A stretch of DNA of 38,058 nucleotides from Octopus sinensis (taxonomy: Eukaryota), in contig NW_021835365.1 in the NCBI RefSeq assembly GCF_006345805.1, positions 1 through 38,058 of the forward strand. Reading direction: 5' to 3'. The position numbers and the translations under genes were made by a program. The notes beneath the pieces are model-generated. The model was not told where the DNA came from. It did not search any database and was given only the letters and a program-made list of their open reading frames with translations. This document shows, piece after piece, positions 961 to 36,172 of this stretch. Every line of letters begins with the position of its first letter. The first letter of the stretch is position 1.

Positions 961-1089
961 GTATATTTATTTGAAAATACTTTTAATGGCTTGGCAAATT
1001 TACAAATTTCCCAGTCTTTTATAATTTGTTCAATAATTAGCGTTTCGCAGTAAAAAGAAATTTACTACATTTGTATAAAGTTTTTGTAT

Positions 1090-1385: not shown

Positions 1386-1429
1386 ACCAAATTTCTAACA
1401 ATAAAAAATTTCTAAAAATAGAATACTAT

Positions 1430-2480
1430 CGATCCCGCTTATTGGGGCATTTTTTTAATAATTTTAAATAAAATTTTTATGCATTATTTTATTTTAAATA
1501 ATAGCGTGTCGTTTAGTGGTTATCCTAAAAAAACTTTCTTGTGGTTTAAGGAAAAAAAATTTTGTGCTGTTGGCAATTCTATATTCGAAAGCGAAATATC
1601 CAAGATGTTTAAAATTGGAAAGGGAACAGTATTTAGAATAAAAATGGAAACTAAACAAGGATTTTATTCAAATCCTATTACTGACGCAGTTCTATACAGA
1701 GACTATGAATCAGATTTATCATTAAAACTCGATCGTCTGGTTTTTGAACTTTTCAAGCATCAGAGACAAGATGGAATTTCAGTTTAATTAAAAAATTGCT
1801 AGAAATATTGCGATTCGGATAAATTTTAGTAGCTTTAAAGGCTCTAATGCAGGGTTTCTTAACAGGGGGTACATGTGCCCAGGGGGTACGCGGAACAATT
1901 TTTTGATTATTCAGATATGTTTCAATTCTTGCACACTTATGGAATTTTGGAGTAAAATGATTCCAAAGTATTCGTTATTGACTATGGCTAGTATGCAATA
2001 TTTAAATTAAAATCGATAGGGGGTATGCTGGGTCCATTTTTAACCTTAAGAGGCACAATTTATCAAAAATTTGAAAAAGGTTAAGAACCGCTGCTCTAAT
2101 AGATAGCTAGGCCGCTTTAAAAATGTAATGAACTATCTTTTAGAGCAATTTTTGGTGAAAAGAATTCCTCCAACAAAAATTTAATTAAAAAATTTATGAA
2201 TAAGTTCAACATGGAAGACATTTTTAATTATAACGAAACCTGCCTTTTCATTAAAAAAAGAAGCCGAATAAATTATTTGTCATTGATGATGAAAATTGCT
2301 TTGGTAGAAAATTCTGTAAAAAATAGCAATCCTTCTTTTATGCTCTTCTATGGATGGATGACAAATAATATTTTAATCAATTGGTTCAACTGTATTGTGA
2401 TAACCAAATGCTTTTATTTAAACGTCTACAAAATCAAAAAATGTAACCGGTTCCATATGCGTAATGGCTGTCACATAATA
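1430..2480 (+). mobile_element. Decayed pogo/Tigger transposon interrupted by a hAT MITE
   Basis: TIR-like CCCGCTTATTGGGGCA near 1433. HTH segment SEISKMFKIGKGTVFRIK, FKGSN motif split by the MITE, then RAIFGEKNS and MEDIFNYNET (degenerate first catalytic D motif). Confidence 0.75.
1850..2093. mobile_element. hAT (Charlie/Buster-type) MITE, 244 bp
   Basis: TIRs CAGGGTTTCTTAAC and GTTAAGAACCGCTG (12/14 match). 8-bp TSD CTCTAATG (1842-1849) / CTCTAATA (2094-2101). No coding capacity. Confidence 0.9.
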
Positions 2481-3324
2481 TACCACTAATTAATGTATTC
2501 GGCAAAAGTCCTTTCAAAGTACTGAATTACTTTACTCAGTGTTTTTAACAAACATCTGAAAACCATTTTTTCAATGATTAGACTGACCGTAGTAAAGATT
2601 TGGTTAAATTTATTGAAAATTGGGAATAAGAAAAAAAAGTAATTAGCAGCACAAATCATTTTCGTCGCTGAGAGCATGATAGTTCTGGACTGATATTTGA
2701 ATGGGAGAAATGAAGATCTGACTTAGAAAAAATCCAACCAAAACGGCCGAGCACAGATAATAGTTGAGAGACATGAATATTAACATTAAAATGTAATTTA
2801 TTCCGAGTCGAATTGTGAGAATTGCGGATTTGCCCAAATGAACATAGCGATAATTTATTTTACCGAATCTGCCGTATTTAAACGTCACATTTTTTTCTAA
2901 AACAAGCAGCAACTCTGATAACATTGTTAGAAACACCGTTGCGAAAATTGCGAGCCATAGGTCTTCAAATTAAATGCAGGAATAATACGTTTTTGTGATT
3001 GCAGAGTGAACCTTTGAAAAAATAAAGTAATTCCTTTCCATTTTGTATTGAATAACATGATTTCCATCAGAAAAATTAATTGAATGTGACACAGTTAATT
3101 TTTTTAAGTAAAAAAATACTATTTAAATTATAAATAATTAAAATATTGTGAGATACAAATATGTCGCGTTCTATGTCTATACTGGCAAAATCCTTTGCCC
3201 TTATAATTAGTCAATAATGGGGAAACAGTCCAAAATGATGGGGTCCTTCAATAATTTTAAAAATCCAACGTATTAAGAATATCCTCGATGATGAGGTCCT
3301 TAGAACCTTTTTGCCAAAAAATTA

Positions 3325-3540
3325 TTTTCGGCATTTTAGTTAACTGACGCGTACAACTTTGTCCCAATTGCGGTGGAGAGAGGTGGTGTGATTGGGCCGG
3401 CCAGGAAGAGGATTCTGTCTATAATTGGGAAACTGGTCGGAAAGAAAATTTTTGACCACCGGGAAACCAGCCGGCTCTACCAGAGAATATTTATAGCAAT
3501 CTTATCAGGTAATTCGTTTGTTATTCGCGATGAAGCTACT
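3325..3540 (+). mobile_element. CRE-clade RLE retrotransposon extreme C-terminus
   Basis: LTDAYNFVPIAVERGGVIGPARKRILSIIGKLVGKKIFDHRETSRLYQRIFIAILSGNS is the CRE terminal motif. Confidence 0.8.
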
Positions 3541-3869
3541 GGCAAATCCCAATTGTTTTCCCTTTCTATACTTTGGAATAATGAACTTATATTACAAAAA
3601 AAGTTACCATAATGCTTTTGTTCTTCGATTTAAACTTTATTTAAATCAGAATGTGTTTTATAAAACAAAAAACACTCTTCTGAAGAAATGGCCATTGAAA
3701 GCTTACTTGCAAACGACGCTACACGCAATAAATTTTGTAAAAAGTCGACACATTTGTCCAAATATTCACCTGAGGATAATTGTTACAATCAATAGAAATA
3801 AAAGACGAAATATTGCATTCTATTAATACGTTATGAGTGTGTTCCGAGTCGATCTTTTCGATAATGATG

Positions 3870-4510
3870 GGTATGCAATTTAGACTACCACTTAATTCTG
3901 GCGTAGCTGGTCTAAGATCTGTTTTGGATTTTGTCCTACCGGCCTTTCTGTCCTCTCACTCATTCTTCTAAAGGTAATCCTGAGAGATTCTACATAAATC
4001 CCCCGAATCGTATTCGGACAAGTTTTTTGAAGATCGGTGTATACTGTGGAAGGATTCAGGATTAAAATTTCAACTCCAAACATCACTCCAACGGAGGTAG
4101 ACAATTTATACTGCGAATCCACCTCAAACAATTTTGCAATGAGGCTTGACCAGCATCGCCTCATTTGTTTACGCTCTGCAGCTGTGCCACACAACGGGTA
4201 TAGCTGAATACTATCTCAATTGCTGGTCTCGGAACATTATTAGAGGATGACTGCATACGCATCGGTACTGTTCTGAGACTCGGACTTGACATCGGCAAAC
4301 AACATTGTTGCAGATGTGGAAAAATGGTCGACGATTCACCCACTTTTTTGCAAATAAAGTGCTGTGAGAACTACTCGGGACTCCGCTGCCAATGTTATCT
4401 TACGAGCTATTGAATCAGCGAGCTTCCCTTCGGTGCCAGAGCCAGTGGGTATAGATCGTGGAGATGAGAAAAGATTCGATGGATGACCACCAATCCTTAC
4501 TCCTCCGGAA
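3870..4510 (+). mobile_element. CRE-clade RLE retrotransposon fragment (post-RT region, CCHC knuckle, start of RLE)
   Basis: RLPLNSG.AGLRS; *LNTISIAGLGTLLEDDCIRIGTVLRLGLDIGKQHCCRCGKMVDD / HPLFC; AANVILRAIESASFPSVPEPVGIDRGDEKRFDG. Stops and frameshifts keep it out of the ORF track. Confidence 0.85.
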
Positions 4511-4519
4511 ATTCGTTGG

Positions 4520-5975
4520 TTTGAGATCAATGTGTTTTGACTCCCATTCGATATATTCATTTATTTTACATGTATCTTCTTTGAAATCGAGTTTTCTCAG
4601 AAAATTGTATGCTTTTTGGATAGAAAAGTTCCTTGACTCAATTTTACTAAGAACATCAACGAGTGGGGAATATTGATTCCATATCTCCTTTAAATCATTA
4701 AGAAGTCCTTCATTTTTTATTGATTCCATTGCTCTCCGAATCAATATGGATTCTCCTTTTAGCGAATTGCATATTTCCAACACTCTGGGAAAATTTTCCG
4801 CGTAGTACTTGATTGCTCGGAGCCAGCTTCCCCATCTAGTAACAATAGGTTCTGGAGGTAGTCCTATTTCAGCAAATAGTGTCCTTCGACTATTATTTTT
4901 CAAAACAAGTTTTTTTATAGAGTCAATTAAGTTATCCACTACAGGATAATTTAGTTTTATCCTTAATGCACAATTGTGAATTAAATGTGCAATACATGTT
5001 ACGTGGAATAAATTAGGATACAAATTTTTTAGTGTTTTTCCGGCTAAAATCATATACTTTGCCGCGTCGGTTAATAACAAATAAAAATTTTTCCTCTCAA
5101 CATTTGCACATCAAATCGTATCATCCACAATCTGACATAGAATTGATGCATTAAGCGAAGAATTTAATGGTACACAACCAATAAGATAGCTGATTTGGGG
5201 ATCCGTTATTTTCCCAATAAGAATATTTACATATTTTTCATTACCAGCGTCAGTCTTATCCACGATAAAAAAATTTTTTTCATTAATTAACAAGCTGATT
5301 ATCTCATGGACACGTCTTTCGGCCAAAATTTTGACATTATTTCGGCATTTGGATTCTGAGGGTAACTCGAATCCGATAGCATTGAAAAAATTGATTAATG
5401 CAGGATTCCTTAGTTTATATAAAGGAATATTTGCTGAAACAAATGCTTCAGTCAGATTTAGTGAAAAATCAGTGTTATGGCTCATAACACTAGCAGAGCC
5501 CGCATGTCTTGTTTTGGCTGTCAATCTCGAATTGGCTCAGCATTTGAATGCAGTGAGACACTTTTCGAGTGATGGGGGAATTGATTTGACGTCCAAAGAG
5601 GAGTTTGATGAGTTCTATGCCGGATTTGAGTACCCCACACTTGAGGAGGGATTTGTTGCTGTCACTGAACATCAATTTGTCTACGATCCTTCAGCGGATA
5701 GCAAAAAATTGTTCAAATATTTTTACACTTTGTGATTTCAAGTTTTTCGATACATTTTGTAGGCCTCGACTAATTAATTATTTGAAGAGAAAGTTTTCCA
5801 CTGTATTAGTGATCTGTTGGTGCACTGCAAATAGAGAGAGAGCTTGTTTGCATTACTTGTTCTACACAAAAGGACTTCAAAACACTTAAATAGAAATCGA
5901 AGGAATAACCATGTTCATTCTTATTTACAAAACGTAAGAATTTCTCATTCTGGTGGTTTTGTATCATGAATTTGA
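4520..5975 (-). pseudogene. DUF659/CGGBP1-like hAT-related transposase, decayed and 3'-truncated
   Basis: EAFVSANIPLYKLRNP, FFIVDKTD, LLTDAAKYMILAGKTLKNLYPNLFHVTCIAHLIHNCA and PPEPIVTRWGSWL. ORFs 5111..5524 and 4415..5080 are in frame and separated by one TGA. The N-terminal extent is uncertain. Confidence 0.8.
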
Positions 5976-6478
5976 CAAAATGAAAGCTTCACTTCGAGTT
6001 TATCTGTTTATTGCACGTATTGGTGTGGGCAATTTTATTGATACATGCAATATAGATATAGACTGTAATTACATTAACTATTAAAGTTAATTGTCACCAA
6101 AAATGATTCCATTATTACAATTATTTTTTACAAGAAATTAATTTGTGTTAAAAAATCACATTCAGGTTGATCAAATCTCTAACGAACATCTCAGTCCGAT
6201 TCATGTGGGCAGGATCAAACTTTTCAGAAGGATCTCCCTCGCTTGAATCGGGGATCACGCGGATTATTATAATTAACTGGCTTACCCTGGTTTTTTGGTC
6301 AATAAATAAATGCATGAAGCAACTTAATTAGTTGTGTAATATTGTTTGTTGCACATGCCGGGCTATAAATAAATTGTGCTAATAATAAATTGCGCCTGGA
6401 CATTTAGAACTTTAATACAATCAAATAAATGAAATAATTTTTTTGTTATCAATTGTTAATTTCCCAATAGGATTATGT

Positions 6479-6590
6479 TTATGGTAGATATGTAGCCTGG
6501 CGGAATGCCAAACTGTTTCCCCGGATGATGGCAATCGAGAACCGTTGCATTAGCCAGTTCGCCTCCCGAGGATCATGGGTGCGCATTGAG
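6479..6590 (-). mobile_element. CRE-clade retrotransposon 3' tip (~110 bp)
   Basis: SMRTHDPREANWLMQRFSIAIIRGNSLAFRQATYLP* is the CRE terminal motif. It lies just downstream of MEX3. Confidence 0.75.
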
Positions 6591-6728
6591 AATGAAATAA
6601 TTATTTTCATAAAATTCCACTTTTTTTAAACACTTTTTAAAAGATTGTGGCGTCTAAGTAAATTAAAAAATAGTAAATAACTTAAGAAATAAAAAGAAAT
6701 TAAAATTTTATTCCAGCCAAGCGTTACT

Positions 6729-7557
6729 TTATTCATAACAAAGTTGCGAATTGAAAAAGTGGATATAGCACATTGTCTCCAAGTACTGCAAGTAGGAGAA
6801 CATATAAAGCGACGGGTCATAATACCCACAAAATAGAATTCCGTAAAATGGTCTATGCAAACATGATTCATAGGTGATATCCCAAGATTGATCACTGGGC
6901 GAAGTCGAGCCCCTACTAGGAGGAGTCGTGTTTTTAAGGGTGATATCCTTGCACTGTTCCTCGTCACCCGACTCAATGGACTTGCTATGAATAGTCTCCA
7001 TTTCCTCAATCGTTAGGAACATACATCTTCTGATGTCTCCCTCATTCACCCCTGTTCTCGTCTGAACGTGTGCTTTGATTTTATCATAGGCACAGGTCAC
7101 ATCACTGGTCTTCCCAATGATTTTGAAAACGGGCTCCTTCCCTCGAGTGGGCGAGACAATGTATGTGCCCGTCTCGCGCTGTATTCGTGTGATCGTCATT
7201 CCCCCATACCCCACAATCAGTCCCACCAAGTGGTCAGGTACCTTCACGTACGCCACCACCTGTTCATCTCCCACGAGTTGTGTCGACCGGATTTTTGAAA
7301 AATGTTGAGCAGCACATTTGATTTCGTTGATGGCCTTTTCGACATCCTCAGGCTCCCCAGTCACGCAGAAGATTGGTTCTTCTCCTCTGGTGGGATTCTG
7401 AATGAATGTGTTTGTGTCTTCGCAAATGGCTTTGATTTTTGACCCTGTCGGTTAATATTCACGCAGCACCTTGTTTTCCGACTATTTCTGCCGTATACTG
7501 GCAATTGGGGACTCGGATAGATATAGTGATATTTTTAGGATTATGAAAAGAAAACAT
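6729..7557 (-). CDS. MEX3: MEX-3 family KH-KH RNA-binding protein (2 exons; 25-nt intron at 7445-7469)
   Basis: Spliced: MFSFHNPKNITISIRVPNCQYTAEIVGKQG|SKIKAICEDTNTFIQNPTRGEEPIFCVTG...AAQHFSKIR...VKVPDHLVGLIVGYGGMTITRIQRETGTYIVSPTRGKEPVFKIIG. These are the two tandem KH domains of MEX3. The C-terminal RING is degenerate or absent. Confidence 0.9.
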
Positions 7558-7989
7558 TTTATAAACAAATAAACAGAAATCAAACTCAAAACGGCAATCA
7601 AGTATAAATACTTATCGGTCGCGTCAATTCACGTTCGTCTATTCACGTGTCAACCTACCCGCATTATTTCTTTACTAAATCATTCTCAAATTAAATGGCT
7701 GCTAATTATTTTAGTGCACTTTGTTGCTAGAATTGTCATAAATATGAATATATTACTTATCCCAGAACTCTTTATTGATGAGATGAGAAGAGTGTATAAA
7801 TTATTACAGAAAAAATTTATTTGAAAAGTCCAGATAAAATTGATTTTTAATTATTGCGTCTGCATTCAGTCGATTCTCCTCCTCTTCGAGCCCGAGCAAG
7901 TGTCTTCGACGGGTACACTTATCCATTTTACAGGGCAGGCCACTTTTGTGGTTGTTCTCGAGTCCGATTTAATTGCATGCTTCGCCGCT

Positions 7990-8859: not shown

Positions 8860-9791
8860 AAACGAGACTGGATAAATTCACAGGCGATTCCGAGGAGAAG
8901 AGACTGTTCGAGTCAAAATACGAAATGCGGGATATATTAGGACGGTTCGGTTGTCTTAATTATTGAAGGGGAGAGAGCAGTGTAATCGTCCGAGTTATCG
9001 AACGCTGTACAGGGAGTGAATTTGCTGCTAAAATAGTGGACAGAAGCAGTGGAAATAATGGTTGGAATCCATCTAACCCGCGTAGAAAGGACTGCATTGG
9101 AGAAATGCTCAGGGATGGCTCACATCAGTTAATGAGCATGTGACATTGTAGTGGCTGTTCACGATGTGTTTGAGACAGAGACAAGTTCATGTTTAATATT
9201 GGACTTGTTGGTTTGGGGGTGTATTGTTTTAGATATGAAGCGGCACACTACTCGACCACAATGTCCGATACGCCTCCTCGCAGGACCAGACGAGGTTTCC
9301 TTGTGTGTGTTGATTAGAAGGATCTTTATGAAGCAAATATTGACTGCGGTTAGTCAATTGCATTCCATCGGTATAATCCACCGTGACCTGAAGGTATTTT
9401 TTATGCATTAAAACCGCAGCTCGAGAACGTGCTCATGACCAATGAAGGCAAACTTTGTGTCGCAGATTTTGGCTTGTCTAAGATCCTACAACCTGATGAG
9501 CAACTGTTTGGTTCCTCGTGGGTTGAGAGGAATAGATTCTTGCGGGACCCTCCTCTACATGGCCCCCGAGTTACTGCGGTGTAGCATGGACGAAGATCCC
9601 TCGGGGTATGGAATGGAGAGGCTGAGAATGTAGGTGTGTGTCCTTCACTGTTTAGATGGGCATGTGGAGTCATTTGCTACATGCTGTAATGCAGTCCTTT
9701 CCATTACAGGAAACCTGATTCGAACAAGCTTATGAAAAATGATAGTTGTCCGCCTTGTGGCTTCTCATTACATTGTTCTACCTCCGTCTAA
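8860..9791 (+). CDS. PHKG: Phosphorylase kinase gamma-like Ser/Thr kinase; multi-exon, start not resolved, C-terminus apparently truncated or frameshifted
   Basis: Spliced: YEMRDILGR|GESSVIVRVIERCTGSEFAAKIVD ... IIHRDLK|LENVLM...VADFGLS ... CGT..YMAPELLRCSMDEDPSGYG (PHKG-type SM.ED..GYG insert) ... WACGVICYML. Micro-introns at 8945-8968, 9061-9085, 9295-9317, 9394-9419 and 9511-9535. Needs 2 or more single-base corrections. Confidence 0.75.
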
Positions 9792-9899
9792 CTTAAACAC
9801 TGCGGCTCCCACTGCCCATTGCAATCGTCTTTCCAAAAACATATGGTGTTAAATATACACACAAAAACAATAAAGGATTCTTTTTAAACAACCACAAAA

Positions 9900-12942: not shown

Positions 12943-12972
12943 CTTTAAATTCTCACAATATTGTACCACATA

Positions 12973-13905
12973 CAGTGCAACCCCTTATTGGGGCGACCCC
13001 GGACGTGGGGCATCCTCGGGTTTTGGGGCAATTTGAATTTCTATTAGGAGTTTTTCTGTTTATTCTTTATAAGATAAACCCCGTTATGGGGCATTTAATA
13101 TTATATATATTTTTTAGTTATAATTTTTGAATTTTATTTTATAATAACTAATAATAACGTGTTTCTGTTGTTATGCCGAAGAGAATTTCTGTCAAAGACA
13201 AATTAGAGATTGCAAAGGCTTTAAAAACGAAAAATATGTCTGAAAGACAAGTTTTAAACAATTTCAAGACAAGCAAAGGGACTATTTCTAGAATCAAACG
13301 AGAAATATGTAATTTTGATGGATGTGAAGGTTCTGAGGGCTTCAGAGAACCCGATAATAGTGATAAACATTCATTTCTCGACAAGGTCGTTTTTACTTCA
13401 TTTCAAAAGTAATAATTAACTATGCATAAATTTCTATAGATTAAGAAATGATAATTTAGTAGTTTCCGGACCATTATTACAATCTACTACCAAGAAAGCA
13501 GCTCAAATTTTAAATTTACCAGAATTTAAAGCTTCCAATGGATGGCTTGATCGTTTTAAGAAACGGCATCAACTTTTTTAAAAACAATTTCTGGTGAAAA
13601 AAAGTCATGTGACACATCCATGCTGAAAAGCTTCTTTAAAACTTATGATAATCACATGGAAGCATATTCCAGCAAGGATATCTTCAACTACGATGAGACT
13701 TGATTATTTGTCAAAAAATCCGACTGTAGATCCTTCGTAGAGTTAACGGACACTTCTAGTGGTGTCAAAAAAAATAAAGAAAGAGTTACCGTTCTTTTAT
13801 GTACAAATTCAATTGGTGAGAAAATGAAACCTTTGGTAATCGGAAAATACAAGCCTCCTCGTTGTTTGAAAAATTTTAATATTGAATAGCATAATGTATT
13901 ATATA
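12973..13905 (+). mobile_element. pogo/Tigger transposon, 5' half (interrupted by Tc1)
   Basis: TA then CAGTGCAACCCCTTATTGGGGC TIR. MPKRISVKDKLEIAK...KTSKGTISRIKR (HTH), FKASNGWLDRFKKRH, DIFNYDET, KERVTVLLCTNSIGEKMKPLVIGK. Confidence 0.9.
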
Positions 13906-14615
13906 CAGTGGTCGTCAAAAAAAATTGCTCACCAATGTTTATGTCTTTATATAGCATTATTCTGATTTATTTTTTTTGTAAACATCTTTAAGTAGTATTT
14001 TATTATTATACCTTAATTTTTATAATAAAATTTGTCTTTTTTATTTACAAACTTAAACAAAACAAAAAATTGCAAGACAAAAAACATTAGCACAAATTGG
14101 AAATCTCATTATCAGTAATTAATATGTCCTCCCCTTGCTAAATATAAAGAATAACTCCTTTTTTTCATTGAATTTACTAAGTTTTGTAAAAAACTTTTAG
14201 GAATTGACTGCCAATTTTCATAATATTTGTCTTTAGATCTTTTTTACTTTTCGGGGATTTTTAGCTAATTCTCTTTTCATAAAGCACCTACATGCTCTAT
14301 TGGGTTAAGATCCGGTGATTGCGATGGCCAATCAAGAATAATATATTTTTTGGTCTCAAAATATGCCTAACCATACGAGATGTATGGCATGAAGCATTAT
14401 CCTGTTGAAAAATAAACGAGGATAAGCCCATTTTTTCAGCTGATTGGTCCAGATTATTAGACAGTAAAGTTATATATATCCAGAGTTCATAGTTTCTACG
14501 ATAAAAACCAAATTGCCTACACCACTATACGATATACAGCCCCAAATCATAACTCTCCTAATCCGAACTTAACAGTCGGCAGCAAATGTGCATTTTTTAA
14601 CTCCGTTTTATTTTT
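13906..14615 (-). mobile_element. Tc1-family transposon, 3' half (DD34E domain) with terminal TIR
   Basis: TA then CAGTGGTCGTCAAAA TIR at 13906. Minus-strand VMIWGCISYSGVG, FQQDNASCHTS, DWPSQSPDLNPIEH and RGGHINY. Confidence 0.9.
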
Positions 14616-15115
14616 TCTGTAAACAAGCTGATGTTTTCTGACTTGTCTCGTGCTATAGAGAGGGCTTTCTCCATTGCCCAAGACTCAACCCTCGCTACAT
14701 ATTCCCTCAGCCTTTTCCAAGAGAGGTCCTTAGATCGCGACAGATCCGTAACCAATATGTCGTCCGCATAGATAATTAGTAGACTCTCCGGATTTACTGG
14801 TTTCGGGATGTCGGCAACGTATAAGTTGAAAAGTAGAGGGCTCAGGACCGACCCTTGAGGCACTCCCCTCCTTAGATTGATTGTATCCGAGGTCCGGTTA
14901 CCACATCTGATAAAAGACTTTCGCATGTGTAAGAAATTCTCTAGCCATTTGACAATCCTTTGCCCCGGATGGATACTGATGATCCTTTCCAGGAGGCCTA
15001 GGTGCCAAACGCTGTCGAACGCCTTTGAAATGTCCAGACAAACAGCTGTCATCCCCATCTTGTGTGTAAGGGCCCTCGAGATTTGCGTTTCCAGTTGGGC
15101 AAAGCAGTTTCCACT
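14615..15115 (-). mobile_element. Non-LTR (Jockey/CR1-like) reverse transcriptase fragment
   Basis: AVCLDISKAFDSVWH, GVPQGSVLSPLLFNLY and YADD, i.e. RT domains 3-5. Confidence 0.93.
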
Positions 15116-15359
15116 TAAATTTTTGAAAAAATGATGTTTTATATTTGAACCATGTTTGCTTTAAAATAGTAAAATTATTTACAACATTAGCAAATTATAA
15201 TGTGAATTATTTTTATTTTTGATATTATAAATTGCAACATTAGCAAATTACAAGTTTGTAACAACTTTAACTCTAATCTTAACTTTAACTCTAACTATAA
15301 ATGATTTCAACGTTATTTATAAACATATTCATCATAAAAAAGACACTAAAGAAAACAGA

Positions 15360-15810: not shown

Positions 15811-15959
15811 GACTCCAGAATTCATTTTATTCATTACATTTTAATTCATTTTATTTTGATCATTGACTTTTCAATTTTTTTACCCCAGTCGCATCAAAAA
15901 ACAAATCAACCTCTCCAGAATATTTACCAATGTGGTGGACTCAGAAAAGAATATTTCTA

Positions 15960-17867
15960 CAGTATAACCTCCATTTGGGGCAGACCTCTGGCTTGGGGAA
16001 CCTCTATTTTTGGGGAAACCTCTATTTTTGGGGTAGTTTGAAAAGGATATAATTTTTATGCGGTAATTTCCAAATTTAGAAATTACCGGAACCTCTAAGT
16101 GGGGCACAGGATTTTTAATTTATATACATATTTGCTATTAAAATTAAAATTAATTATATAAAATTTCATTGGAAGCCTCGTGTAATTTTTGTATTCTTGT
16201 TGTTATGGCTCGTAAGCTTAGTCTTGAGTTAAAGATCAAAATTGCCAAGGAATTAAGTGAAAATAAACATCTTACTGAACGAGATATTGTAGATAAGTAC
16301 AAAATTAGTAAAGGTTTTTTATTAATGTAAGTTTTTAGGCGCTGTGTCACGTATTAAAAAAAATTATCTCAATTTTTTAATACTGGGGCTGTTCAAACAG
16401 ATTTTCCCAGAAATATTCAACGCTCTCCTCATACTTTACCCCAAAAATTGGATAAAATTGTTTTTGAGGCTTTCACCAAGACAAGGGAAGAATTTATTCC
16501 TGTGTCCGGTCCTCTTTTAAAAAATATTGCTTCCAAAGTAGCAAGGATGTTGAATTATTCGGCGTTCAAAGGGTCCAATGGCTGGTTGGAAAAATTTAAG
16601 AAAAGACATATGTTGTCATTTAAGACAATTAGTGGAGAGAAAAACTCTTCCGATGTTTCTTCGCTTGATATGTTTTTTTTCCAAGTATGATGAATACGTA
16701 AAAGAATATGGTCTTCAAAATATTTTTAATTGCGACGAAACTGGGTTATATATTAAAAGGATACCTTCAAAATCATTTGTAAGTTCGGATGAAGATTGTT
16801 TCGGAATAAAAGGAGTAAAGAAAAATTCACTATTCTTTTGTCGGTCAGTGCTTGTGGCGAAAAATTGAAGCCATTGTTAGTAGGAAAATATAAATCCCCA
16901 CGTTGTATGAAAAACTTTAACCCTGAAGAACATGGAGTTTCATATTCATCATCTAAAAACAGTTGGATGACATCAGAAATATTTATTACATGGCTCACCA
17001 TTACAAATGAACAAATGATTACGCAAAAGAGAAAAATTGTTTTGTTACTTGATAACGCAAGCTGTCACAAATATATCCATCTTCCAACATTGAATTGTTT
17101 TTTCTCTCTCAAAAAATACAACCTCATTAATTCAACCGTTAGACATGGGTATTATTAAATCTTTCAAGTCCAATTATCTTAACGCTTTATTGGATTTTAC
17201 TCTTTATTTTGAGGACGTTGAGTTACAATTGTTAATTTAAAAAAAATAAATCTTCGTCATGTCATAATAATTGTTGGAAAAACATGGCAAAATTTAAATC
17301 CTGAAACAATAACGAATTGTTGGGAAACAATTAATAACTGTCGGCAACAGATTCCTAGTTCAATTTTTTAGTTAACAGTGAGAAAGAAATTTGGACACGA
17401 TAATTGCAGACGTAATTGCTGAAAATGAAGAAGAAAATAATGATGAGTCAATATATGACCAAACTGAATGCAACTGTTCACACTTGGACACGATAACAGC
17501 AATGAATAACCTTGAAGAGAATATTCACCGTTTGTTTCCCGATGCGTTAAAAGACTATTACAATTTCAGAAAAATATTGGGCATACATATGAAGAAATCT
17601 GCAACAGGAAACAATAACAGATTATTTTCGTGTATAATAGAATAAAAATTTTTTCTACTTGAAAAAATCTAATTATCAATAAAATTAGTGGAAAACATGT
17701 TTAAATGTTCTTAAAAATACTTTATTTATTTATAAATTAATGAAAAATATGCTAAAACTATTAAAATTTTTATAAAAATAAAGAAAATTTCAGACCTCCA
17801 TTTTTGGGGAAACCTCTATTTTTGGGGCAATTTTTCAAAATTGATGCCCCAAATGGAGGTTATACTG
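15960..17867 (+). mobile_element. Full-length pogo/Tigger transposon (1908 bp) with intron-containing transposase
   Basis: Perfect 23-bp TIRs CAGTATAACCTCCATTTGGGGCA with TA on both sides. Transposase from ATG 16205 with a 25-nt intron (16314-16338). Motifs FKGSNGWLEKFKKRH, FNCDETG, LDNASCH and QPLDMG. Several 1-nt indels. Confidence 0.95.
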
Positions 17868-17949
17868 TATAAAGATCCGATGTTAAGAGACGGAAATACA
17901 GAGAAATGATAGGTTTCTTTATGGGTAATACATTTTATGAATTGGCCTC

Positions 17950-19989: not shown

Positions 19990-21295
19990 GTTACCCGACC
20001 TCTCTAGCTTGTAGGAGGCCGGCTGTCCTCAGGCGCTCAGGAGCTAGTGGTGGGCGCTTCCGTAAGTCCATAATGCCCACCGGAGGCCCCTGGACGCTGT
20101 GTTTCTCACGGCGACTAAAAGACCCTCTATACTCTCCCCATTGGATCCCTTGGATCTTCTGGCTGTCCTCGAAGTGGCGCTTAGCCTCTTCCATGAGTCA
20201 CTTTCCCTCTCCGGGGATTTTGAACCCAATCCGGGACCTTCGAACTGCCTCATCATTCTACAAATAAACATTAATGGGATCTCTTGTAAACAAGATGAGA
20301 TAATGGAATTCTTACCCTCTCATGATGTGGACATCGCCTTAATACAGGAAACCCGCCTGATATCGACACGTCCTACCCCTCGATTCAAGGGATTTTCAAC
20401 TGTCCATATGGACCGCCCTAACGGACTCATCACTCTCATCCGTGACAACATTCCCTTCACTAACACTACCAATTCCATACGTTCCACATTTCCCCCGACG
20501 GCCACTTGGAGTTCCTCACAGTACTAATAACAATCAATAATGTTGCCTACACAATCGTCAACCTGTATATTCCTCATCCTACAAGTTGTTCGAAAGGCTA
20601 CATTCCAGACCTCTCCTGGATCTTGCCATTAAAGAACACAATTGTGTGTGGAGACTTCAATGCTAAAAACCCATCATGGTTTAATGAAGGGAAACTAGAT
20701 CAACGGGGGGAGTATATCTCCGCGGAGCTCGACCACCTTGTTGCCCTAAACGACCCACACCAGCACACACGTACTGCCTTGCGAACTGGCTTTTGGACAT
20801 TCTGGTCGGTTGCTTACGACCTTCCTTCTGACCACAATCCCGTACTTTTGAAGATCAAAAAATACTTCCAAAGTTCTATAACCAAAAAGATATTTGTCAA
20901 CTACAAACACGGTCTGTGGTCGAAATTCCAACAAGAAACAGATCAGTATCTCTTAAACTTCTCAGTCCTAAATTTTAAATCGATCGATTACACAATAAAA
21001 CACTTCAACAATTGCATAATCTCTGCAGACCGAAAACACATTCCCAAAGGATTTATCCGTGGGGCAAAACCACTTTTTACAAAGGAGATCATTGACCTCA
21101 TAAAAGAGAGACGTGCAATAAAGAGGAATGGCGTCCGGGACTCCAACTCGGGCTCCAGATTATCAAGTATTAACGGGATAATCACTGACCATATTCTACA
21201 AAACAAAAGAGCCAGGTAAAAAAAGTTTGTATCTAGATTGGATCATCGCACCAAGCAAACTGAATTTTGGAACGCATTGAAATCTATTTGTTTGA
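19990..21295 (+). mobile_element. APE-type LINE 5' portion (2A-like peptide + endonuclease + linker), 3'-truncated
   Basis: SLSGDFEPNPGP, then ILQININGI, ALIQETRL, VNLYIP, CGDFNAKNPSW and DLPSDHNPV (APE motifs), followed by the W.KF...T linker. Frameshifts present. Confidence 0.9.
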
Positions 21296-21752: not shown

Positions 21753-22349
21753 CTATTCGATCTCCTCAGGGAAAATCACAGCCTTTGGAGCAATCAAAAG
21801 TCGGGGATCGTCGACCAAGGCCTTCCTCATGTCTAAATGAATTGCCACAATAAACCCAAGGCATCCTCGTCAGTATAATAATCAGTCACAGTCCTGTAAA
21901 GAACGTACCCCAACTTCTCGTACATCGCACGGGCCACCAAATTGGACTTTCTTACATACAAGTCGACAAACTGGCACCCCTTCCTGCATGTTATTAGATT
22001 GGGACAACTCTGCGGATATATCCTCCAAATATTTCATCAATTTCTTGGCAATTCCGCATTTTCGGTATTCTGGGTCCACGGAAATGGCAGTCACGTGTCC
22101 GTGGTAGTCGGAATCCCCCTCGTCCTTGCCTATCACGTACCGACGATTTGGCCGGACATATTTTCGACAACTAGGAAATTTTTGGGTAAAGGCAAAAGTA
22201 GAGCATGTAGAAGGATATGTCAAACTAGGCCATTACAAGGGAGTCTACATTTTCGGTGAAGGGGTCGAGATTGCTTAAATTAGTGTATAATTATACATGT
22301 TATTTATCTTGAAAAGATCCTCCCATTTGACACACCTCACTGTAAACAT
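21753..22349 (-). CDS. NAA20: N-alpha-acetyltransferase 20 (NatB catalytic subunit), 5 exons
   Basis: Spliced: MFTVRCVKWEDLFKINNI|NLDPFTEN|FDISFY...YVIGKDEG..YHGHVTAISVDPEYRKCGIAKKLM..LEDISAE|KGCQFVDLYVRKSN..A..MYEKLGY..YRTV..YY.DEDAL|DMRKAL...PEEIE*. Introns at 22274-22296, 22225-22248, 21984-22008 and 21833-21855. Two 1-nt gaps in exon 3. Confidence 0.92.
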
Positions 22350-22409
22350 TTAAATATTTATTAAAAATAGTCATTAATCAAAAAAACCAATAGTCACCAA
22401 CCATCAAGA

Positions 22410-24650
22410 GGACCTCTCTCTGGACAGCACTCTTGCAAAACCGAAGCCTCCTTTCTGTTGCTATTGTCTGGAGATGTTGAACAAAATCATGGACCAAAGA
22501 AATTCTTGAACGTTATGAGTTTAAACATAAATGGCGTCAGAGGAAACAAAGACTTCAATATGTACATGGAAAGAAAGAATATCGATATTTGCCTGCTACA
22601 AGAAACGAAGTTATCAGTAATGGCCAGCACTCCAAGATTCCATGGTTATAACGTTGTAAGACAGGATCGACCCACGGGTCGAGGTGGGGGCTTAATGACC
22701 CTTGTCAGGAAGGGAATTGGATTCACAAAAACTCATGAAATCTTTACAAAACTGGCCCAAGATGCTAACTCTGAAGTCATGGGGCTTACTATTCATACCT
22801 CCAATGGAATTATTACTATTGGAAACTTATATATTCCCCCCCGGGGTCATGCGCCAAAGGATTTACTGTCGATCTGTCTAGCCTTACTGCTTTCCGGAGA
22901 TTTTAATGCCAAGCACCCTCTGTGGTTTCAGAAACAACCGGCGGAGGAAAACTCATTATTTTCCAATTCAAACGACTGTCCATTATGAACGATCCAAAGA
23001 AAAATACAAGGACGCCATATAACGGAAAAGAATCGATCACATCTCCAGACTTAACATTTTGTTCCTCGAAATTAGCAGCAATTATTTTTTTGGACGGTAA
23101 ACTATGACCTACAGAGTGATCACAATCCAATCATTATACGAATAAACGGTTCTCCAATGACCCGAGAGAAACATGATTTCTACTACGATTATAATAATGC
23201 AAAATGGTCGGCTTATAAGAAATACGTCGATACGAAACTTTCCACATTCTATCCGGAACCCAACTCCCTCGATAGGGCAGTCAAATACTTCAATAAAGTG
23301 ATATTCGTGAGAAGGAAATTATATGTCCATAAACGTTTCCGGAAATATCAGAAAGAAAACAAAACCCAGAAATTATCAGACTATAAAGGAAAGAAACTTC
23401 CTAAGCGCAAAAAATTTCTAACCAAAAAAACAACAAAGAGAATAAGGACACTGAATAAGGCGATCCGGAGTAGACAGTCAAAAAAGCAGAAGCTGGGGAG
23501 GATATCATCAGCTATGAAAAGGAATAGTCCACTATCTGTGGAAGATGCTACGTAAATTTCGGGACTATGATGCACAGACAAGTGTGAACCTGGTGAATCA
23601 CTAAATTTAAACAAATTTATGAACCACTGTGTCTCAATCAGCTACAAACCATATCAGAAACACAATAGGCCACCAAATTCTTTACGAAAACCAAAAAAGG
23701 GACAGCTATCAACCCCTTTTCTACCTGATCAAGTCATATTAGTAATCCACACACAATGAATACAATTTCCTGTGGTCCAGACGGAGTACCAATGATTCTG
23801 CTCAAGAAAGCAGAAAATTTACTCGTTGAATATGGTTACCATATTTAAAACTATGGCTCGCCAATTTTCTGAATGGACGTCGGGGTAGAATCTACAAGGG
23901 CAATCGAAGATCTGCATCGAGGCTACTACTGAATGGAGTGCCACAAGGTTCCCCCTATCCCCCGTATTATTCAACCTAATGTTGAACGATATGCTTTTTC
24001 CTGAAAACAAGAATGACATTTTACTATCATATGCGGATGATATAATAGGTATGGTCAGTAAGCAAGCAACAAGAAGATTACAAAAAATATAAATAACCTG
24101 TGTATATGGCCAGAAAGGTCTGAGCTAACCTTTTTTACAACTAACAAAAGACTGGGAATTTGTCGATAAATGTGACCATGGAAGGAAATCAATTCCTCAA
24201 AATAAAACTCTAAAGATACTAGGAATCACCTTTGACACCTCTCTAACCCTTACTCCCCATACGGAAAACGTGTTGACGAAATGCAATAAGAAACTAAACT
24301 TTCTTAAAGCATTTCTTGGAAAATTGGAAAACGCCAAAGGAACTTACAGATTAGAATCTCTATACACCCAATACATTAAATTGACAATTGGTTACGAATG
24401 TACAGTATGGGGATGCAATCTAGCATATACAAATGTCAAAAAATCGACAATATTCAAATGGAGATTGTAAACCTCCTACCGAATGTCACGGAGAACAAAA
24501 TTCAACCAAAGGGATTAGAATAAATCGTTAAAGAAAACGGTGGAGACCTCAGAAAAAAAGTCCATGTTCAGGATCGCCGACCTCTTAGGCAATGCGCTGA
24601 AGAACACAGAGAGAAGATGCGAAGGTTTCTAAAAGAGGCTGGGATCACCT
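22410..24650 (+). mobile_element. APE-type LINE (endonuclease + RT), decayed with internal deletions; degenerate 2A-like N-terminus
   Basis: FLLLLSGDVEQNHGP, SLNINGV, LLQETKL, DRPTGRGGGL, GDFNAKHPLW, SPDLTF, SDHNPI. RT motifs GPDGVP, GVPQGSP, YADDI and KILGITFD. 3' end approximate. Confidence 0.88.
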
Positions 24651-27119: not shown

Positions 27120-27663
27120 GTCATTCATCACTAACACTACTATGTTTACTTACACTGAAACCTCACTAACTAAATTTATTTGGCCAATTCTGATGAATTC
27201 TTAACTGCTACAAATATTAATGTACAAAGAAATTATTCTGATTACGAATAAAAGTGATCACTTTTCAAACTTTTAACTCATTTTCTTAAAGAAACTGTTA
27301 GTTAAAAACGATTAATTTGAAAATACGTTACATGCAAAGGTGACAAAAACTTATCCGAGTGTCGAGTCATCAAATAATTACAAGTTAATCAATAAGACTT
27401 TTAAATTGTAGCATTTTAACTGAAAATATCAAGTGGCTGAAAGGCTAGTCGAGACCCTACTGGTCAGCTTGACAACGCCGCACTGCGTATTTTAAATTAT
27501 TATTATTATTTCGCAAACTAAACTGGAGACCACGGTGATATAAATAGTTTGAAACTTATATAAACATTTAACAAAATTACATTTTTTAACTTTATTCATA
27601 GTAACTATCTTAGATTTTATTTTTTAACTTGATCTAAATGTTTGGAAAAACACTAACCATTTA

Positions 27664-29577
27664 CAGTCTTCCCTCTATTGCTCGCCATTTTTGGGACCAA
27701 GCCAAAATTGCGACTAAGAGAATTGGCGAGTAAGAAAAATAATTAATATCCTATTTTCTATCAACAAAAATTTCTATAATTTTTAACTATCTAAACATTT
27801 AAATAAATAGCCGAAACATTTATTTAAAAAACCAAAATTTAAGTAAAGTAATCATTTATAGTTTTTTTGTATGATCTTTTCTCTATATTTTTTGCATTTT
27901 TAATAAACTTTCTAGCATATTCACATCAAAATTATCGTCATGTGAAAAATATTTTTTGAGGTCCGAAATACATTTTATCGCATCTCGATGTGTAATACAG
28001 TTGTTTCTTTCACAATCTTCAGTAATTGAACTGTCTAAAATTGCATTTTCATCGTTATTTTCATAGTTATTGTTTTGAACAAATTCATGAAGTTCGTCAT
28101 TTTCAGAGTACGTAAAGTCTATAAACTCCTCTTTTATGGGATCTGTGATCATTAATTTTTCTATAATTTGTTCGAAATTTTTTATTTTATGGTCTCCCAT
28201 AATAGGTTCTTCAATTCTGTTTTCCCATTTGGCGTGCTGAAAACATTTTGATATTGTATCCACTGACACATCTTTCCAGGCTAGATAAGAAAATAAGACT
28301 GCATCTTTCAGGGTTAATTTTTTATAGCATTCAATAGTTGCGTCACCGTAGTTTATTTGTTTAATTATATGTTTTAATTTAAATTTGTTGAAATGAGATT
28401 TGAATGATCTAATGATTCGTGATCCATCGGTTGAAGCACAGTAGTCGTGTTTTTTGGTAAATATAAAACTTCTATCATACTTAATTCGATTGTTGTTCTA
28501 TGCGAAGGACAATGGTCTACAACCAAAAGTATCTTTTTTTGTTTTTGTTGAGAGTCTTGTTCCAATTATACAACCATTCGTTAAATATTTCCATGTTCAT
28601 CCAAGCCTTTGAAGAATTCCGGTATTGTAAATATTCATCAACGTTCAAGTTTTTAAAACACCTTGGTTTCTTAAACTGCCAGATCATCAAAGGGGTTCTT
28701 TTATCGGATCCAGTCATATTTGCGCAAAGCATTAATGAAAATCTGAAAATTGGCTAAAAATGTTAAACCTATCTTTAAGTAATTTTTGTCCTGATCGGCG
28801 TTTCCTGCAGACACTTTTTGATGGAATGGTCTTGTAAAATACGCCGGTTTCGTCGGCATTATAAACATTTTCTGAACCATATTCATTTATTTTAGAAGGG
28901 ATAATTTTTTTAAAGTCTTCGATTTGGTCTTTGAAGTCTTCGATCCCAATTCACCATGAAAAATTCTTAGTTTTACATTGTGCCTTTTTTTGAACTTTTC
29001 AAGCCATCCTTTACTGGCTTTAAATTCGAAGAGACCGTTTAACGCAGCAATTTCAGTTGCTTTCGACAAAATTATCTCATCATTGAGGCAAACTCCAATA
29101 GATTCCATGTAATCTATCCAGGCAATGATTTCAGAATCAATTGCTGAATATCTAAGTTTCGAAAAACGAGAACTTCTCCCATAAATTGGATTAATTCCAA
29201 GAATCTTCTGTTTGTTCAATTTAAGATCGTTAATTGCACGTCTCGAAATTGATTTTTTGAAACGCGACGAAAAAATTTCTGAAACACGCCTTAGACTTAG
29301 AGAAGAATTATCAATAAGATAATTTATAATTTCTCTTTTTTGATCATAAGATAATCTTGAGCACTTCCTCATGTTACAAAAAAAACACGCGGTATAAATA
29401 TTTGAAAAAATTATTTTTTTTAATAATAAATTTTAATTTTTTAATACTAAAACGTGGCGAGTAAGAGAATTTGGCGAGCAATGGAATTTCCTTAGTAAAA
29501 ATGGCATTTTTTCTAAAAAAGTGGCGAGTTATAGAAATGGCGAGCAATAGAATTGGCGAGCAATAGAGGGTAAACTG
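27664..29577 (-). mobile_element. Full-length pogo/Tigger transposon (1914 bp)
   Basis: TIRs CAGTCTTCCCTCTATTGCTCGCCA and TGGCGAGCAATAGAGGGTAAACTG (22/24) with TA on both sides. Minus-strand transposase 29372 to 27883: FKASKGWLEKFKKRH, YNADETG, VVDHCPSH and QPMD, with frameshifts. Confidence 0.95.
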
Positions 29578-29959
29578 TATTTGTTATCAGGCATTACATT
29601 TTTTACTTTTCTTTTTTCTTCATCAAATCTATATGTTGTTTCAATGAAAATTCTTTCCATAATATTTCGATTCAACCCAAACTGTTCCTATTTAACTATA
29701 CCTTATTCTCTATTCTAAAATCATATTTTTACCTTTCTACCCCTATCTTTTTATTCATTCTTTTAAAATGAGATGAACTCATGTTGGACGAGTAAATTGA
29801 AAATTTTATAAGTCGTTTCTAAAAATAAATACATTGTAAATTTATCATTCAGTTTATCTTGGACAAACGATGCCTAATTATTTTCATCTAAATAATAAAT
29901 GAGATAAAAATTTATTATTTCATGAATCACAGTGTTAATTCCAGAAATATTACTAAACT

Positions 29960-30535
29960 TTTAGAAGATTTCATTGATCACCGAGTGATGTGTCGTATTA
30001 TACGAATAAGTTACTTTGTCTAAAAATAGTTTCCGTTTTTTGATTTTTTCCATCAGTTTTGCCATACTTTATTTCAATGTCTGTTTAAAGCGGTCAATCA
30101 CACCTTCATTCAGTTAAACTTATAAACTTGTGACTGGGAATAATTTTGTTTTCCATAAATATTTTTGATTTTATTTTTTTTGCTTATTTGATCCATCCGT
30201 TGTTTTTTGAATTCCACTCCGTTGTTGGAAACTCGAAAATAAATTGTTCTGGAACATTATGATAACTGATTTTGTAAATAAAATTCTCATCCGTTGTCTG
30301 TTTGTAAAATTTGGCAATATCAAATTTGACAAAATTTTTTTAAATTTATTTATAGCTTCTAAAATAAGTATCAGCAAAAGCAGTTTTATTTTTTAAGAAT
30401 TTGCAGACTCCGAATCTGTTGTAAATGTTGATAATTGTTTGTTAAAATATTTATATTTGTTAACATCAAACGGATTCCCTCTGAATCTTTCATGTGGATT
30501 TCTTGCAGTTACATGGTAATTAGAATCAATACCTA
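29960..30535 (-). pseudogene. Decayed rve integrase fragment (copy B)
   Basis: Duplicate of 385-960. Confidence 0.62.
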
Positions 30536-30664
30536 AGTATATTTATTTGAAAATACTTTTAATGGCTCGGCAAATTTACAAATTTCCCAGTCTTTTATAA
30601 TTTGTTCAATAATTAGCGTTTCGCAGTAAAAAGAAATTTACTATATTTTTTATGAAGTTTTTGT

Positions 30665-30963
30665 AATCCCTGGCGGCATTCTGGTGAATAGCGAATTCGA
30701 GTGTCCGCGTAAAACAGCCAGCAAGATCCTCTGAATAAGGAATATAAATTCCCTGAAATCTTTGGATCGACAGACGGCCAAGTTTCTTAAGATGAGCAAA
30801 CGTCTTGGCTCCAAAAATACAGGAAGTGTCGACGGCAATTGCCCAAAAGCAAAATCGATCGCGTAAATCCTTGTATTTTGTCAATTTCGTGAATTCGGTT
30901 TTCTCGGCCGACGAACCGTGTTGATAAAGCGTGGAATTCAAGGCTCCGTGGAATACTAAATTA
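30665..30963 (-). mobile_element. CRE retrotransposon 3' end (copy B)
   Basis: Duplicate of 1090-1385. Confidence 0.7.
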
Positions 30964-31007
30964 ACCAAATTTCTAACAATAAAAAATTTCTAAAATAGAA
31001 TACTATC

Positions 31008-32060
31008 GATCCCGCTTATTGGGGCATTTTTTTAATAATTTTAAATAAAATTTTTATGCATTATTTTATTTTAAATAATAGCGTGTCGTTTAGTGGTTAT
31101 CCTAAAAAAACTTTCTTGTGGTTTAAGGAAAAAAAATTTTGTGCTGTTGGCAAATTCTATATTCGAAAGCGAAATATCCAAGATGTTTAAAATTGGAAAG
31201 GGAACAGTATTTAGAATAAAAATGGAAACTAAACAAGGATTTTATTCAAATCCTATTACTGACGCAGTTCTATACAGAGACTATGAATCAGATTTATCAT
31301 TAAAACTCGATCGTCTGGTTTTTGAACTTTTCAAGCATCAGAGACAAGATGGAATTTCAGTTTAATTAAAAAAATTGCTAGAAATATTGCGATTCGGATA
31401 AATTTTAGTAGCTTTAAAGGCTCTAATGCAGGGTTTCTTAACAGGGGGTACATGTGCCCAGGGGGTACGCGGAACAATTTTTTGATTATTCAGATATGTT
31501 TCAATTCTTGCACACTTATGGAATTTTGGAGTAAAATGATTCCAAAGTATTCGTTATTGACTATGGCTAGTATGCAATATTTAAATTAAAAATCGATAGG
31601 GGGTATGCTGGGTCCATTTTTAACCTTAAGAGGCACAATTTATCAAAAATTTGAAAAAGGTTAAGAACCGCTGCTCTAATAGATAGCTAGGCCGCTTTAA
31701 AAATGTAATGAACTATCTTTTAGAGCAATTTTTGGTGAAAAGAATTCCTCCAACAAAAATTTAATTAAAAAATTTATGAATAAGTTCAACATGGAAGACA
31801 TTTTTAATTATAACGAAACCTGCCTTTTCATTAAAAAAAGAAGCCGAATAAATTATTTGTCATTGATGATGAAAATTGCTTTGGTAGAAAATTCTGTAAA
31901 AAAATAGCAATCCTTCTTTTATGCTCTTCTATGGATGGATGACAAATAATATTTTAATCAATTGGTTCAACTGTATTGTGATAACCAAATGCTTTTATTT
32001 AAACGTCTACAAAATCAAAAAATGTAACCGGTTCCATATGCGTAATGGCTGTCACATAAT
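31008..32060 (+). mobile_element. Decayed Tigger with hAT MITE (copy B)
   Basis: Duplicate of 1430-2480. Confidence 0.75.
31429..31673. mobile_element. hAT MITE (copy B)
   Basis: Same TIRs and CTCTAATG/CTCTAATA TSD as 1850-2093. Confidence 0.9.
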
Positions 32061-32906
32061 ATACCACTAATTAATGTATTCGGCAAAAGTCCTTTCAAAG
32101 TACTGAATTACTTTACTCAGTGTTTTTAACAAACATCTGAAAACCATTTTTTCAATGATTAGACTGACCGTAGTAAAGATTTGGTTAAATTTATTGAAAA
32201 ATTGGGAATAAGAAAAAAAATTAATTAGCAGCACAAATCATTTTCGTCGCTGAGAGCATGATAGTTCTGGACTGATATTTGAATGGGAGAAATGAAGATC
32301 TGACTTAGAAAAAATCCAACCAAAACGGCCGAGCACAGATAATAGTTGAGAGACATGAATATTAACATTAAAATGTAATTTATTCCGAGTCGAATTGTGA
32401 GAATTGCGGATTTGCCCAAATGAACATAGCGATAATTTATTTTACCGAATCTGCCGTATTTAAACGTCACATTTTTTTCTAAAACAAGCAGCAACTCTGA
32501 TAACATTGTTAGAAACACCGTTGCGAAAATTGCGAGCCATAGGTCTTCAAATTAAATGCAGGAATAATACGTTTTTGTGATTGCAGAGTGAACCTTTGAA
32601 AAAATAAAGTAATTCCTTTCCATTTTGTATTGAATAACATGATTTCCATCAGAAAAATTAATTGAATGTGACACAGTTAATTTTTTTAAGTAAAAAAATA
32701 CTATTTAAATTATAAATAATTAAAATATTGTGAGATACAAATATGTCGCGTTCTATGTCTATACTGGCAAAATCCTTTGCCCTTATAATTAGTCAATAAT
32801 GGGGAAACAGTCCAAAATGATGGGGTCCTTCAATAATTTTAAAAATCCAACGTATTAAGAATATCCTCGATGATGAGGTCCTTAGAACCTTTTTGCCAAA
32901 AAATTA

Positions 32907-34092: not shown

Positions 34093-34099
34093 ATTCGTT

Positions 34100-36060: not shown

Positions 36061-36172
36061 TTTATGGTAGATATGTAGCCTGGCGGAATGCCAAACTGTT
36101 TCCCCGGATGATGGCAATCGAGAACCGTTGCATTAGCCAGTTCGCCTCCCGAGGATCATGGGTGCGCATGAG
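36061..36172 (-). mobile_element. CRE 3' tip (copy B)
   Basis: Duplicate of 6479-6590. Confidence 0.72.

Follow-up and report, generated by a model that had tools for sequence, protein, structure and literature searches.

Drosophila pogo, reportedly the founding element of the pogo/Tigger group (a description attributed to Tudor et al. 1992), is said to combine a TA target-site duplication, short terminal inverted repeats (TIRs), a CENP-B-type helix-turn-helix (HTH) and a DDE_1 domain. Its two open reading frames (ORFs) are said to be joined by a small host-sized intron of about 55 nt, the minimal class of the fly. The transposase genes of Tc1 and Tc3 of Caenorhabditis elegans also contain introns. 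Here we describe a pogo/Tigger transposon at positions 15960-17867 of a stretch of 38,058 nt filed under Octopus sinensis (contig NW_021835365.1 of assembly GCF_006345805.1; the whole stretch is called the window). Its transposase gene is interrupted by only 25 nt at 16314-16338, which, judged from the sequence, are very probably a real phase-1 spliceosomal micro-intron with canonical GT-AG ends.

A similar case is Lemi1 of Arabidopsis, a pogo-type transposase whose frame was proposed to be restored by splicing of one intron with host-type signals (PMC1636448). In Lemi1, a single-copy element, the intron is plant-sized and interrupts the catalytic part around codon 385 (PMC1636448), whereas the intron described here lies at codon 37, in the first HTH, of multicopy families. 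The P element of Drosophila is likewise a DNA transposon that needs intron removal and in which retention leads to a premature stop (PMC5443660). It differs in belonging to another superfamily, in having three introns and in the tissue-regulated retention of the third intron (IVS3), which yields a 66-kDa DNA-binding repressor (PMC5443660), whereas retention in the window family would give a stub of 41 amino acids (aa). Spliceosomal introns also occur in IS630/Tc1/mariner transposases of the TLEWI elements of bivalves (bioRxiv 10.1101/656579) and of Sclerotinia Tc1/mariner elements (PMC4188875), and the TLEWI preprint calls introns of class II elements 'rare and rather exceptional' (bioRxiv 10.1101/656579). 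TLEWI elements are without TIRs, low in copy number and look domesticated (bioRxiv 10.1101/656579); the elements studied here, in contrast, have perfect TIRs, TA duplications, multiple near-identical copies and introns of 25-30 nt. Two large surveys of the pogo superfamily leave introns unmentioned.

Introns of the same class, 22-30 nt with GT..AG ends and reduced splice motifs, have been described in host genes of dicyemids and myxobolids (PMC6736024, PMC13644364, PMC2222250), and Dicyema and the myxobolid myxozoans are the only animals in which introns below 30 bp are known (PMC13644364). A limited literature search uncovered no micro-intron carried by a transposon in dicyemids or myxobolids, and as far as we found the intron described here has no transposon-borne predecessor in the ultra-short animal class (25-30 nt). 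The discovery is modest, being a known kind of feature with a size set by the host: introns in cut-and-paste transposases, although uncommon, and ultra-short dicyemid host introns are already known, and the intron size here follows from the host. What is new is that a Tigger lineage present in multiple copies and with intact ends has a conserved intron of the shortest animal class.

The element, its insert and a second intron-bearing family

The element was compared with two further copies of its family, on contigs L001 and L005. Its features are as follows.

15958-15959: left TA target-site duplication, read as TCTA/CAGTATAACC
15960-15982, plus strand: left TIR of 23 nt, CAGTATAACCTCCATTTGGGGCA, a perfect match to the right end
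16000-16039, plus strand: subterminal repeat of ACCTCTATTTTTGGGG units, matched at 92.5% by the right-end repeat of L001
16205-16313, plus strand: transposase exon 1, 36 codons and the first base of a Gly codon, identical in L001 and L005
16314-16338, plus strand: probable phase-1 micro-intron of 25 nt, GT..AG, GTTTTTTATTAATGTAAGTTTTTAG, with a TAA in the frame of exon 1
16339-17645, plus strand: exon 2, with helix 3 of the HTH, HTH_Tnp_Tc5, DDE_1 and a C-terminal tail, degenerate in the window copy; stop codon TAA at 17643-17645
17794-17833, plus strand: subterminal repeat of the right end, matched at 92.5% by the right-end repeat of L001
17845-17867, minus strand: right TIR of 23 nt, a perfect match to the left TIR
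17868-17869: right TA target-site duplication, beside the right TIR

The TA duplications on both sides and the perfect TIRs of 23 nt agree with the original prediction, an earlier reading of the window, and shuffled sequence gave no match comparable to this TIR pair. Together with DDE_1 and a Tc5/CENP-B-type DNA-binding domain, they identify 15960-17867 as one copy of a pogo/Tigger cut-and-paste DNA transposon of the IS630-Tc1-mariner group. On the spliced family protein, Pfam recognized DDE_1 over its full length (1-177/177, E 5e-39) and HTH_Tnp_Tc5 (E 3e-11); in the window copy the transposase domains are scattered over several frames. In database searches the best named matches were annotated as Tigger-derived protein 6, and the best protein match was a RefSeq model labelled Octopus sinensis on contig L001, with 87% identity. 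The subterminal repeat at 16000-16039 is possibly a binding site for the transposase.

From the ATG at 16205 to position 16313, the frame reads MARKLSLELKIKIAKELSENKHLTERDIVDKYKISK plus one G. When 16313 is joined to 16339, it continues as ...KYKISK-G-AVSRIKKNYLNF and thus restores KISK-G-AVSRIKK, while the unspliced frame reads ...KGFLLM and then TAA and stops after 41 codons. Start codon, GT..AG borders, restored motif and 41-codon product are all in the sequence as originally predicted. The junction context is AAAG/GT...AG/GC, and intronless relatives read AGTAAAGGA at this place. The intron splits a Gly codon that, judged by the CENP-B structure, falls into the turn joining helix 2 to helix 3 within the first HTH. 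In an alignment with 16 uninterrupted homologues, the spliced proteins of the window family and of the second family described below showed no gap across the junction, and the spliced N-terminus matched the CENP-B DNA-binding domain (PDB 1HLV residues 6-130, E 2.3e-9), again gap-free at the junction.

Three copies of the family were found, in the window and on L001 and L005, each flanked by TA within different flanking sequence. L001 is 97.6% and L005 98.8% identical to the window element, and the identical 25-mer is present in 3/3 copies, so that it is not the private insertion which, according to the original prediction, would speak against an intron. After removal of the 25 nt, the frame of L001 and L005 is open for about 338 codons from the ATG through HTH, HTH_Tnp_Tc5 and DDE_1; spliced L005 would need just one extra A (A7 to A8) to give 472 aa to the stop. 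In their assembled form, all three copies have one or more additional defects. The automatic gene models of related copies are unable to use introns of 25-30 nt: model P0001 (L001:2730-3828) jumps from KISK to DFPRN and thereby deletes helix 3 of the first HTH, and model P0003 (L003:6001-7201) begins at a spurious downstream ATG. These NCBI models, which skip or truncate the first HTH, are a warning that standard gene finders mis-model micro-intron genes.

A second Tigger family is represented by five copies on other contigs of the assembly that contains L001 (L002, two on L003, L006 and L007). Its members share 53.7% aa and about 67% nt identity with the window family, and 5/5 copies have an insert of 29 or 30 nt, GTATCTTTTT(T)AACTAATTATTAATTACAG. 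In the motif K-(T/S)-K-G/TISRIK, the insert comes directly after base 1 of the Gly codon, the same codon and phase as the 25-mer. Its sequence is unrelated to the 25-mer, and it has GT..AG ends and an in-frame TAA. Without the insert, L006 has an intact ORF of 466 aa; unspliced, L006 has an in-frame TAA. Position, phase and GT..AG ends have thus been kept while sequence and length have changed, and the downstream frame of 430 codons has stayed open, which is the behaviour of an intron and not that of a lesion.

We consider it highly probable that these elements form a Tigger lineage with a two-exon transposase gene, from which the host spliceosome removes the 25-nt intron, and in which the spliced mRNA alone encodes the transposase. 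Removal of the 25 nt (29-30 nt in the second family) would give a transposase of about 472 aa, and unspliced RNA would end at codon 42. Splicing would most simply be constitutive; that it takes place at all we infer from the sequence. Such an element would offer a compact natural substrate for the minimal needs of 25-nt intron splicing.

Several observations weigh against this interpretation. Because identity within each family is at least 97.6%, conservation within a family is by itself weak evidence, and the case rests on the comparison between families. The window copy itself regains no ORF on splicing. Protein searches with the N-terminus returned distant matches only and no spliced product; for both families, neither the spliced nor the unspliced product had an exact match in look-ups; and among 1.8 billion representative proteins scanned with the spliced N-terminus, the mis-modelled P0001 was the sole near-identical match. 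The junction pattern with a gap of 0-25 nt had no match in metagenome contigs. Pfam placed the first HTH below its curated threshold, with a weak HTH_23 match (E 0.003). The introns of the transposable elements have 16-17% GC, compared with a mean of 38% in the sampled host introns. Finally, we infer the identity of the host, and the search with a MEX3-like protein of the window returned a single match (45% identity).

Two other readings of the coding sequence were discarded. A 32-nt GT..AG candidate for a second intron at 17340-17371 has CT as its 5' site in L001 and AT in L005; L005 reads through it with one extra A (CRQQIPSSNFLVNSEKENLD), and homologues have a spacer of similar length. With a ciliate code, in which TAA and TAG are read as Gln, the unspliced frame would be open; however, the standard code already gives clean host exons and transposon ORFs, and the host genes are of metazoan type.

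Host introns and the probable host

The original prediction had placed the intron in the size class of host introns and in an AG/G context, and both points held. Sixteen host introns were read by hand against conserved motifs, in NAA20-, PHKG- and MEX3-like genes of the window and in TOP1 and UAP56 on related contigs. All 16 are GT..AG introns of 23-29 nt (median 25), with weak signals beyond GT and AG; those in the window measure 23-26 nt. The 'host-style' label thus rests on measured lengths and is independent of the host's name. The following junctions were read in the window.

22274-22296, 22225-22248, 21984-22008 and 21833-21855, minus strand: introns of 23, 24, 25 and 23 nt in the NAA20-like gene
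9394-9419, plus strand: intron of 26 nt in the PHKG-like kinase gene, whose removal restores HRDLK/.../LENVLMT
8945-8968, 9511-9535, 9630-9655 and 9686-9709, plus strand: PHKG-like introns of 24, 25, 26 and 24 nt
9128-9151, plus strand: PHKG-like junction of 24 nt, inconsistent in phase
7445-7469, minus strand (duplicate at 37024-37048): intron of 25 nt in the MEX3-like KH gene, whose removal restores VGKQ-G/SKIKAICED

The TOP1 introns measure 27, 25, 29 and 27 nt (for example L003:1056-2116) and lie on the 500-kb contig behind L003 (VCDQ01002911.1); a single intron of 24 nt is found in the UAP56-like gene on L001 (VCDQ01006390.1). GTTTTT as a 5' end also occurs in host TOP1 introns. A branch-like TTAAT motif stands 13 nt before the 3' end of the element's intron, but any YTRAY motif is found in just 7/16 host introns and is thus not diagnostic in this genome.

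Introns of about 25 nt, a GC content of about 35%, a transposon-rich window and related contigs filed under Octopus sinensis together indicate that the window most likely comes from a dicyemid such as Dicyema. The renal sac of Octopus sinensis is the habitat of Dicyema japonicum, for whose genome a GC content of 36.7%, a repeat content of 49% and a mean intron length of 38 bp have been reported (PMC6736024). The related contigs belong to the GenBank assembly GCA_006345805.1 of Octopus sinensis (L001, L002 (VCDQ01013367.1), L003 and L005-L007), in which contigs with host introns of 24-29 nt have several repeat families in common with the window. These contigs are probably dicyemid parasite DNA that contaminates the octopus assembly. 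In that case the wrong species name is attached to RefSeq models such as XP_029654418, XP_029655427 and XP_029656090, titled 'tigger ... 6-like [Octopus sinensis]'. The micro-introns thereby flag large contigs under Octopus sinensis as probable parasite DNA.

Two of the host genes show irregularities of their own. The NAA20-like N-acetyltransferase gene (21833-22345, minus strand) loses its frame by 1 nt twice, near 22185 in an A5 run and near 22137 at GG, and is either a pseudogene or a victim of homopolymer errors. In the PHKG-like kinase gene (8900-9800, plus strand), which contains five or six micro-introns, no C-terminal half of the kinase domain is recognizable; the gene may be truncated or decayed.

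Alternative explanations and the age of the intron

The micro-intron could tie the transposase to the dicyemid: its removal would require a spliceosome adapted to introns no longer than about 30 nt, and the element would stay silent if it were transferred into the cephalopod host or another animal. Retention might also differ between germ-line (axoblast) and somatic cells of the parasite, and a control like that of the P element would then have arisen independently in the pogo group. We regard this reading as unlikely.

It appears quite unlikely that retention of the intron is regulated and serves as an on/off switch for the transposase, between germ line and soma or between life stages, as with the third intron of the P element. 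For the P element, regulation through IVS3 retention is established (PMC5443660). Retention of the 25-, 29- and 30-nt introns, too, gives a premature stop, through an in-frame TAA or a frameshift, and since this holds for every variant, splicing is a possible control point. Nothing in the sequence, however, indicates regulation, and in their minimal splice signals the introns resemble ordinary host introns. The product of retention, 41-44 aa long, ends inside the first HTH; that of the window family, with 41 aa, ends before helix 3 and has no Pfam match, so that a role as DNA-binding repressor is unlikely. In-frame stops in tiny introns are general in micro-intron genomes such as that of Paramecium and are no sign of a switch.

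An insertion that disabled a master copy, resembled an intron by chance and was spread by mobilization of the dead copy in trans would also account for the 25 nt. Every copy of the window family does have another defect, and identity within the family is too high to show selection. The second family, however, has a different insert at the same codon and in the same phase, again with GT..AG ends, and keeps its ORF of 466 aa after about 33% nt divergence. By a rough estimate from base composition, the chance of GT and AG ends is about 0.3% per random insert, and such an insert would have been needed twice at the same site. We therefore hold a disabling insertion to be very unlikely.

Nor is the intron recent. 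The original prediction had considered a recent gain in an element whose sisters lack the intron, and it rightly described uninterrupted motifs in other Tiggers of the window (KTSKGTISRIK at 13266-13298; KIGKGTVFRIK at 1611-1643, with a duplicate at 31189-31221). With 33-45% protein identity to the element, however, these intronless Tiggers are other families, whereas the three true copies all carry the intron. The second family has the intron at the same codon and in the same phase, although its protein is only 54% identical; the intron is therefore older than the split of the two families and was present in their common ancestor. A recent gain private to the window copy or its family is consequently most improbable, even though both the window and the genome also contain Tiggers that lack the intron and the intronless element L004 groups near both intron-bearing families. 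From the original interpretation, then, the host-sized intron, its AG/G context and its location in the first HTH of a Tigger/pogo transposase remain, while recent gain, intronless sisters and the youth of the element do not.

The intron is absent from the window Tiggers at 1587 and 12971, from a further Tigger family on a micro-intron contig (L007:2643-3925, MDYETKLKIAKEILKKNLSERQLMKKYNTSKGTISRIKRN...), which has none at the HTH site, and from L004. The latter, a Logan contig (ERR3671687) of 1631 nt with 27.6% GC, contains an intact, intronless Tigger of 467 aa that is 47% identical to both intron-bearing families. Its TIR, TA/CAGTGTCATGC...CCACTTTGGGGCA, is related to that of the window family. 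The transposase tree with intron presence mapped, as originally proposed, was built by neighbour joining. In it both intron-bearing families group with L004, and the intronless protein P0002 clusters with both, at bootstrap values of 14-28%; the order of gain and loss is unsupported at these values, and loss in L004 and earlier branching of L004 are indistinguishable. By pairwise identity (53.7% vs 47%), a sister relationship of the two intron-bearing families is favoured, and the simplest explanation is that their common ancestor gained the intron once. A gain followed by loss in some lineages is possible, as is an ancestrally longer intron that shrank along with the host introns. Compared by eye, intron ends and exon ends showed no convincing similarity that would point to an origin by tandem duplication of an AGGT segment. 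That the position has been kept across two diverged families shows that a selfish element can depend on the unusual splicing of its host.

Decay of the window copy and neighbouring elements

Once the 25 nt are removed, the frame of the window copy remains open for 13 more codons and is then lost at a T6 run. Two homopolymer runs account for the first breaks of the frame.

16373-16378, plus strand: T6 run (T7 in the other two copies), the first frame break past the junction; with T7 the frame reads ...NYLNFFNTGAVQTDFPRN...
16673-16680, plus strand: T8 run (T7 in the other copies), the second frame break, found by comparison of the copies

Further private indels lie near 16806, 17081, 17103-17104, 17230, 17386, 17612 and 17633-17634, and one near 17361 is common to the window copy and L001. 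In total the window copy has about 11 private indels relative to L001 and L005, mostly in homopolymer runs; about 9 of them are in coding sequence, and beyond the T6 run about 8 more break the frame. With about 9 coding indels the copy as assembled cannot encode a transposase, spliced or not, and is not an intact, potentially autonomous copy; among the copies of the two intron-bearing families, L006 of the second family alone has an intact ORF. The original prediction had called the element young on account of its TIRs; these are perfect and the copies 97.6-98.8% identical, yet the window copy has its private indels and no coding capacity.

Some of these indels may be assembly noise. The window contains a direct duplication of 7.85 kb (2-7853 and 29578-37432, 99.44% identical) whose two copies differ by 19 indels vs 23 substitutions, 16 of the indels being single bases in homopolymer runs. 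This pattern points to noise in the assembly or to a repeat that was collapsed or expanded. The indel density of the element, about 6 per kb, is well above the background of the duplication and of NAA20. Although this homopolymer-length noise and the two 1-nt breaks of the NAA20-like gene might invite doubt about the intron, an assembly or sequencing artefact has a negligible chance of explaining it, since an identical 25-nt block that is not a homopolymer occurs on three contigs and in at least two assemblies. The MEX3-like gene lies within the 7.85-kb duplication, together with DUF659-type ORFs and a fragment of a Tigger.

The window is rich in transposons and contains, besides the element described here, other Tigger families, fragments of non-LTR (long terminal repeat) retrotransposons and a weak DUF659 match. 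The three Tigger families or fragments with 33-45% aa identity to the studied element lie at 12971-13910 (plus strand), at 1587-2282 and 31165-31862 (plus strand) and at 37533-38058 (minus strand). The TIR of the first starts near 12971, and its frame has several in-frame stops; the last runs off the edge of the window. Another pogo-type element, about 1.9 kb long, is found at 27662-29579 (minus strand), with TIRs beginning TACAGTCTTCCCTCTATTGCTCGCCA... that match at 90%, and with HTH_Tnp_Tc5 and a remnant of DDE_1; its transposase is left as pieces in several frames. Non-LTR fragments at 14600-15160 (minus strand), 20464-21216 (plus strand) and 22371-22985 (plus strand) gave matches to RVT_1 (E 3e-25) and to endonuclease domains, in agreement with the genome reported for D. 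japonicum, which is rich in long interspersed nuclear elements (LINEs) and consists of repeats to 49%.

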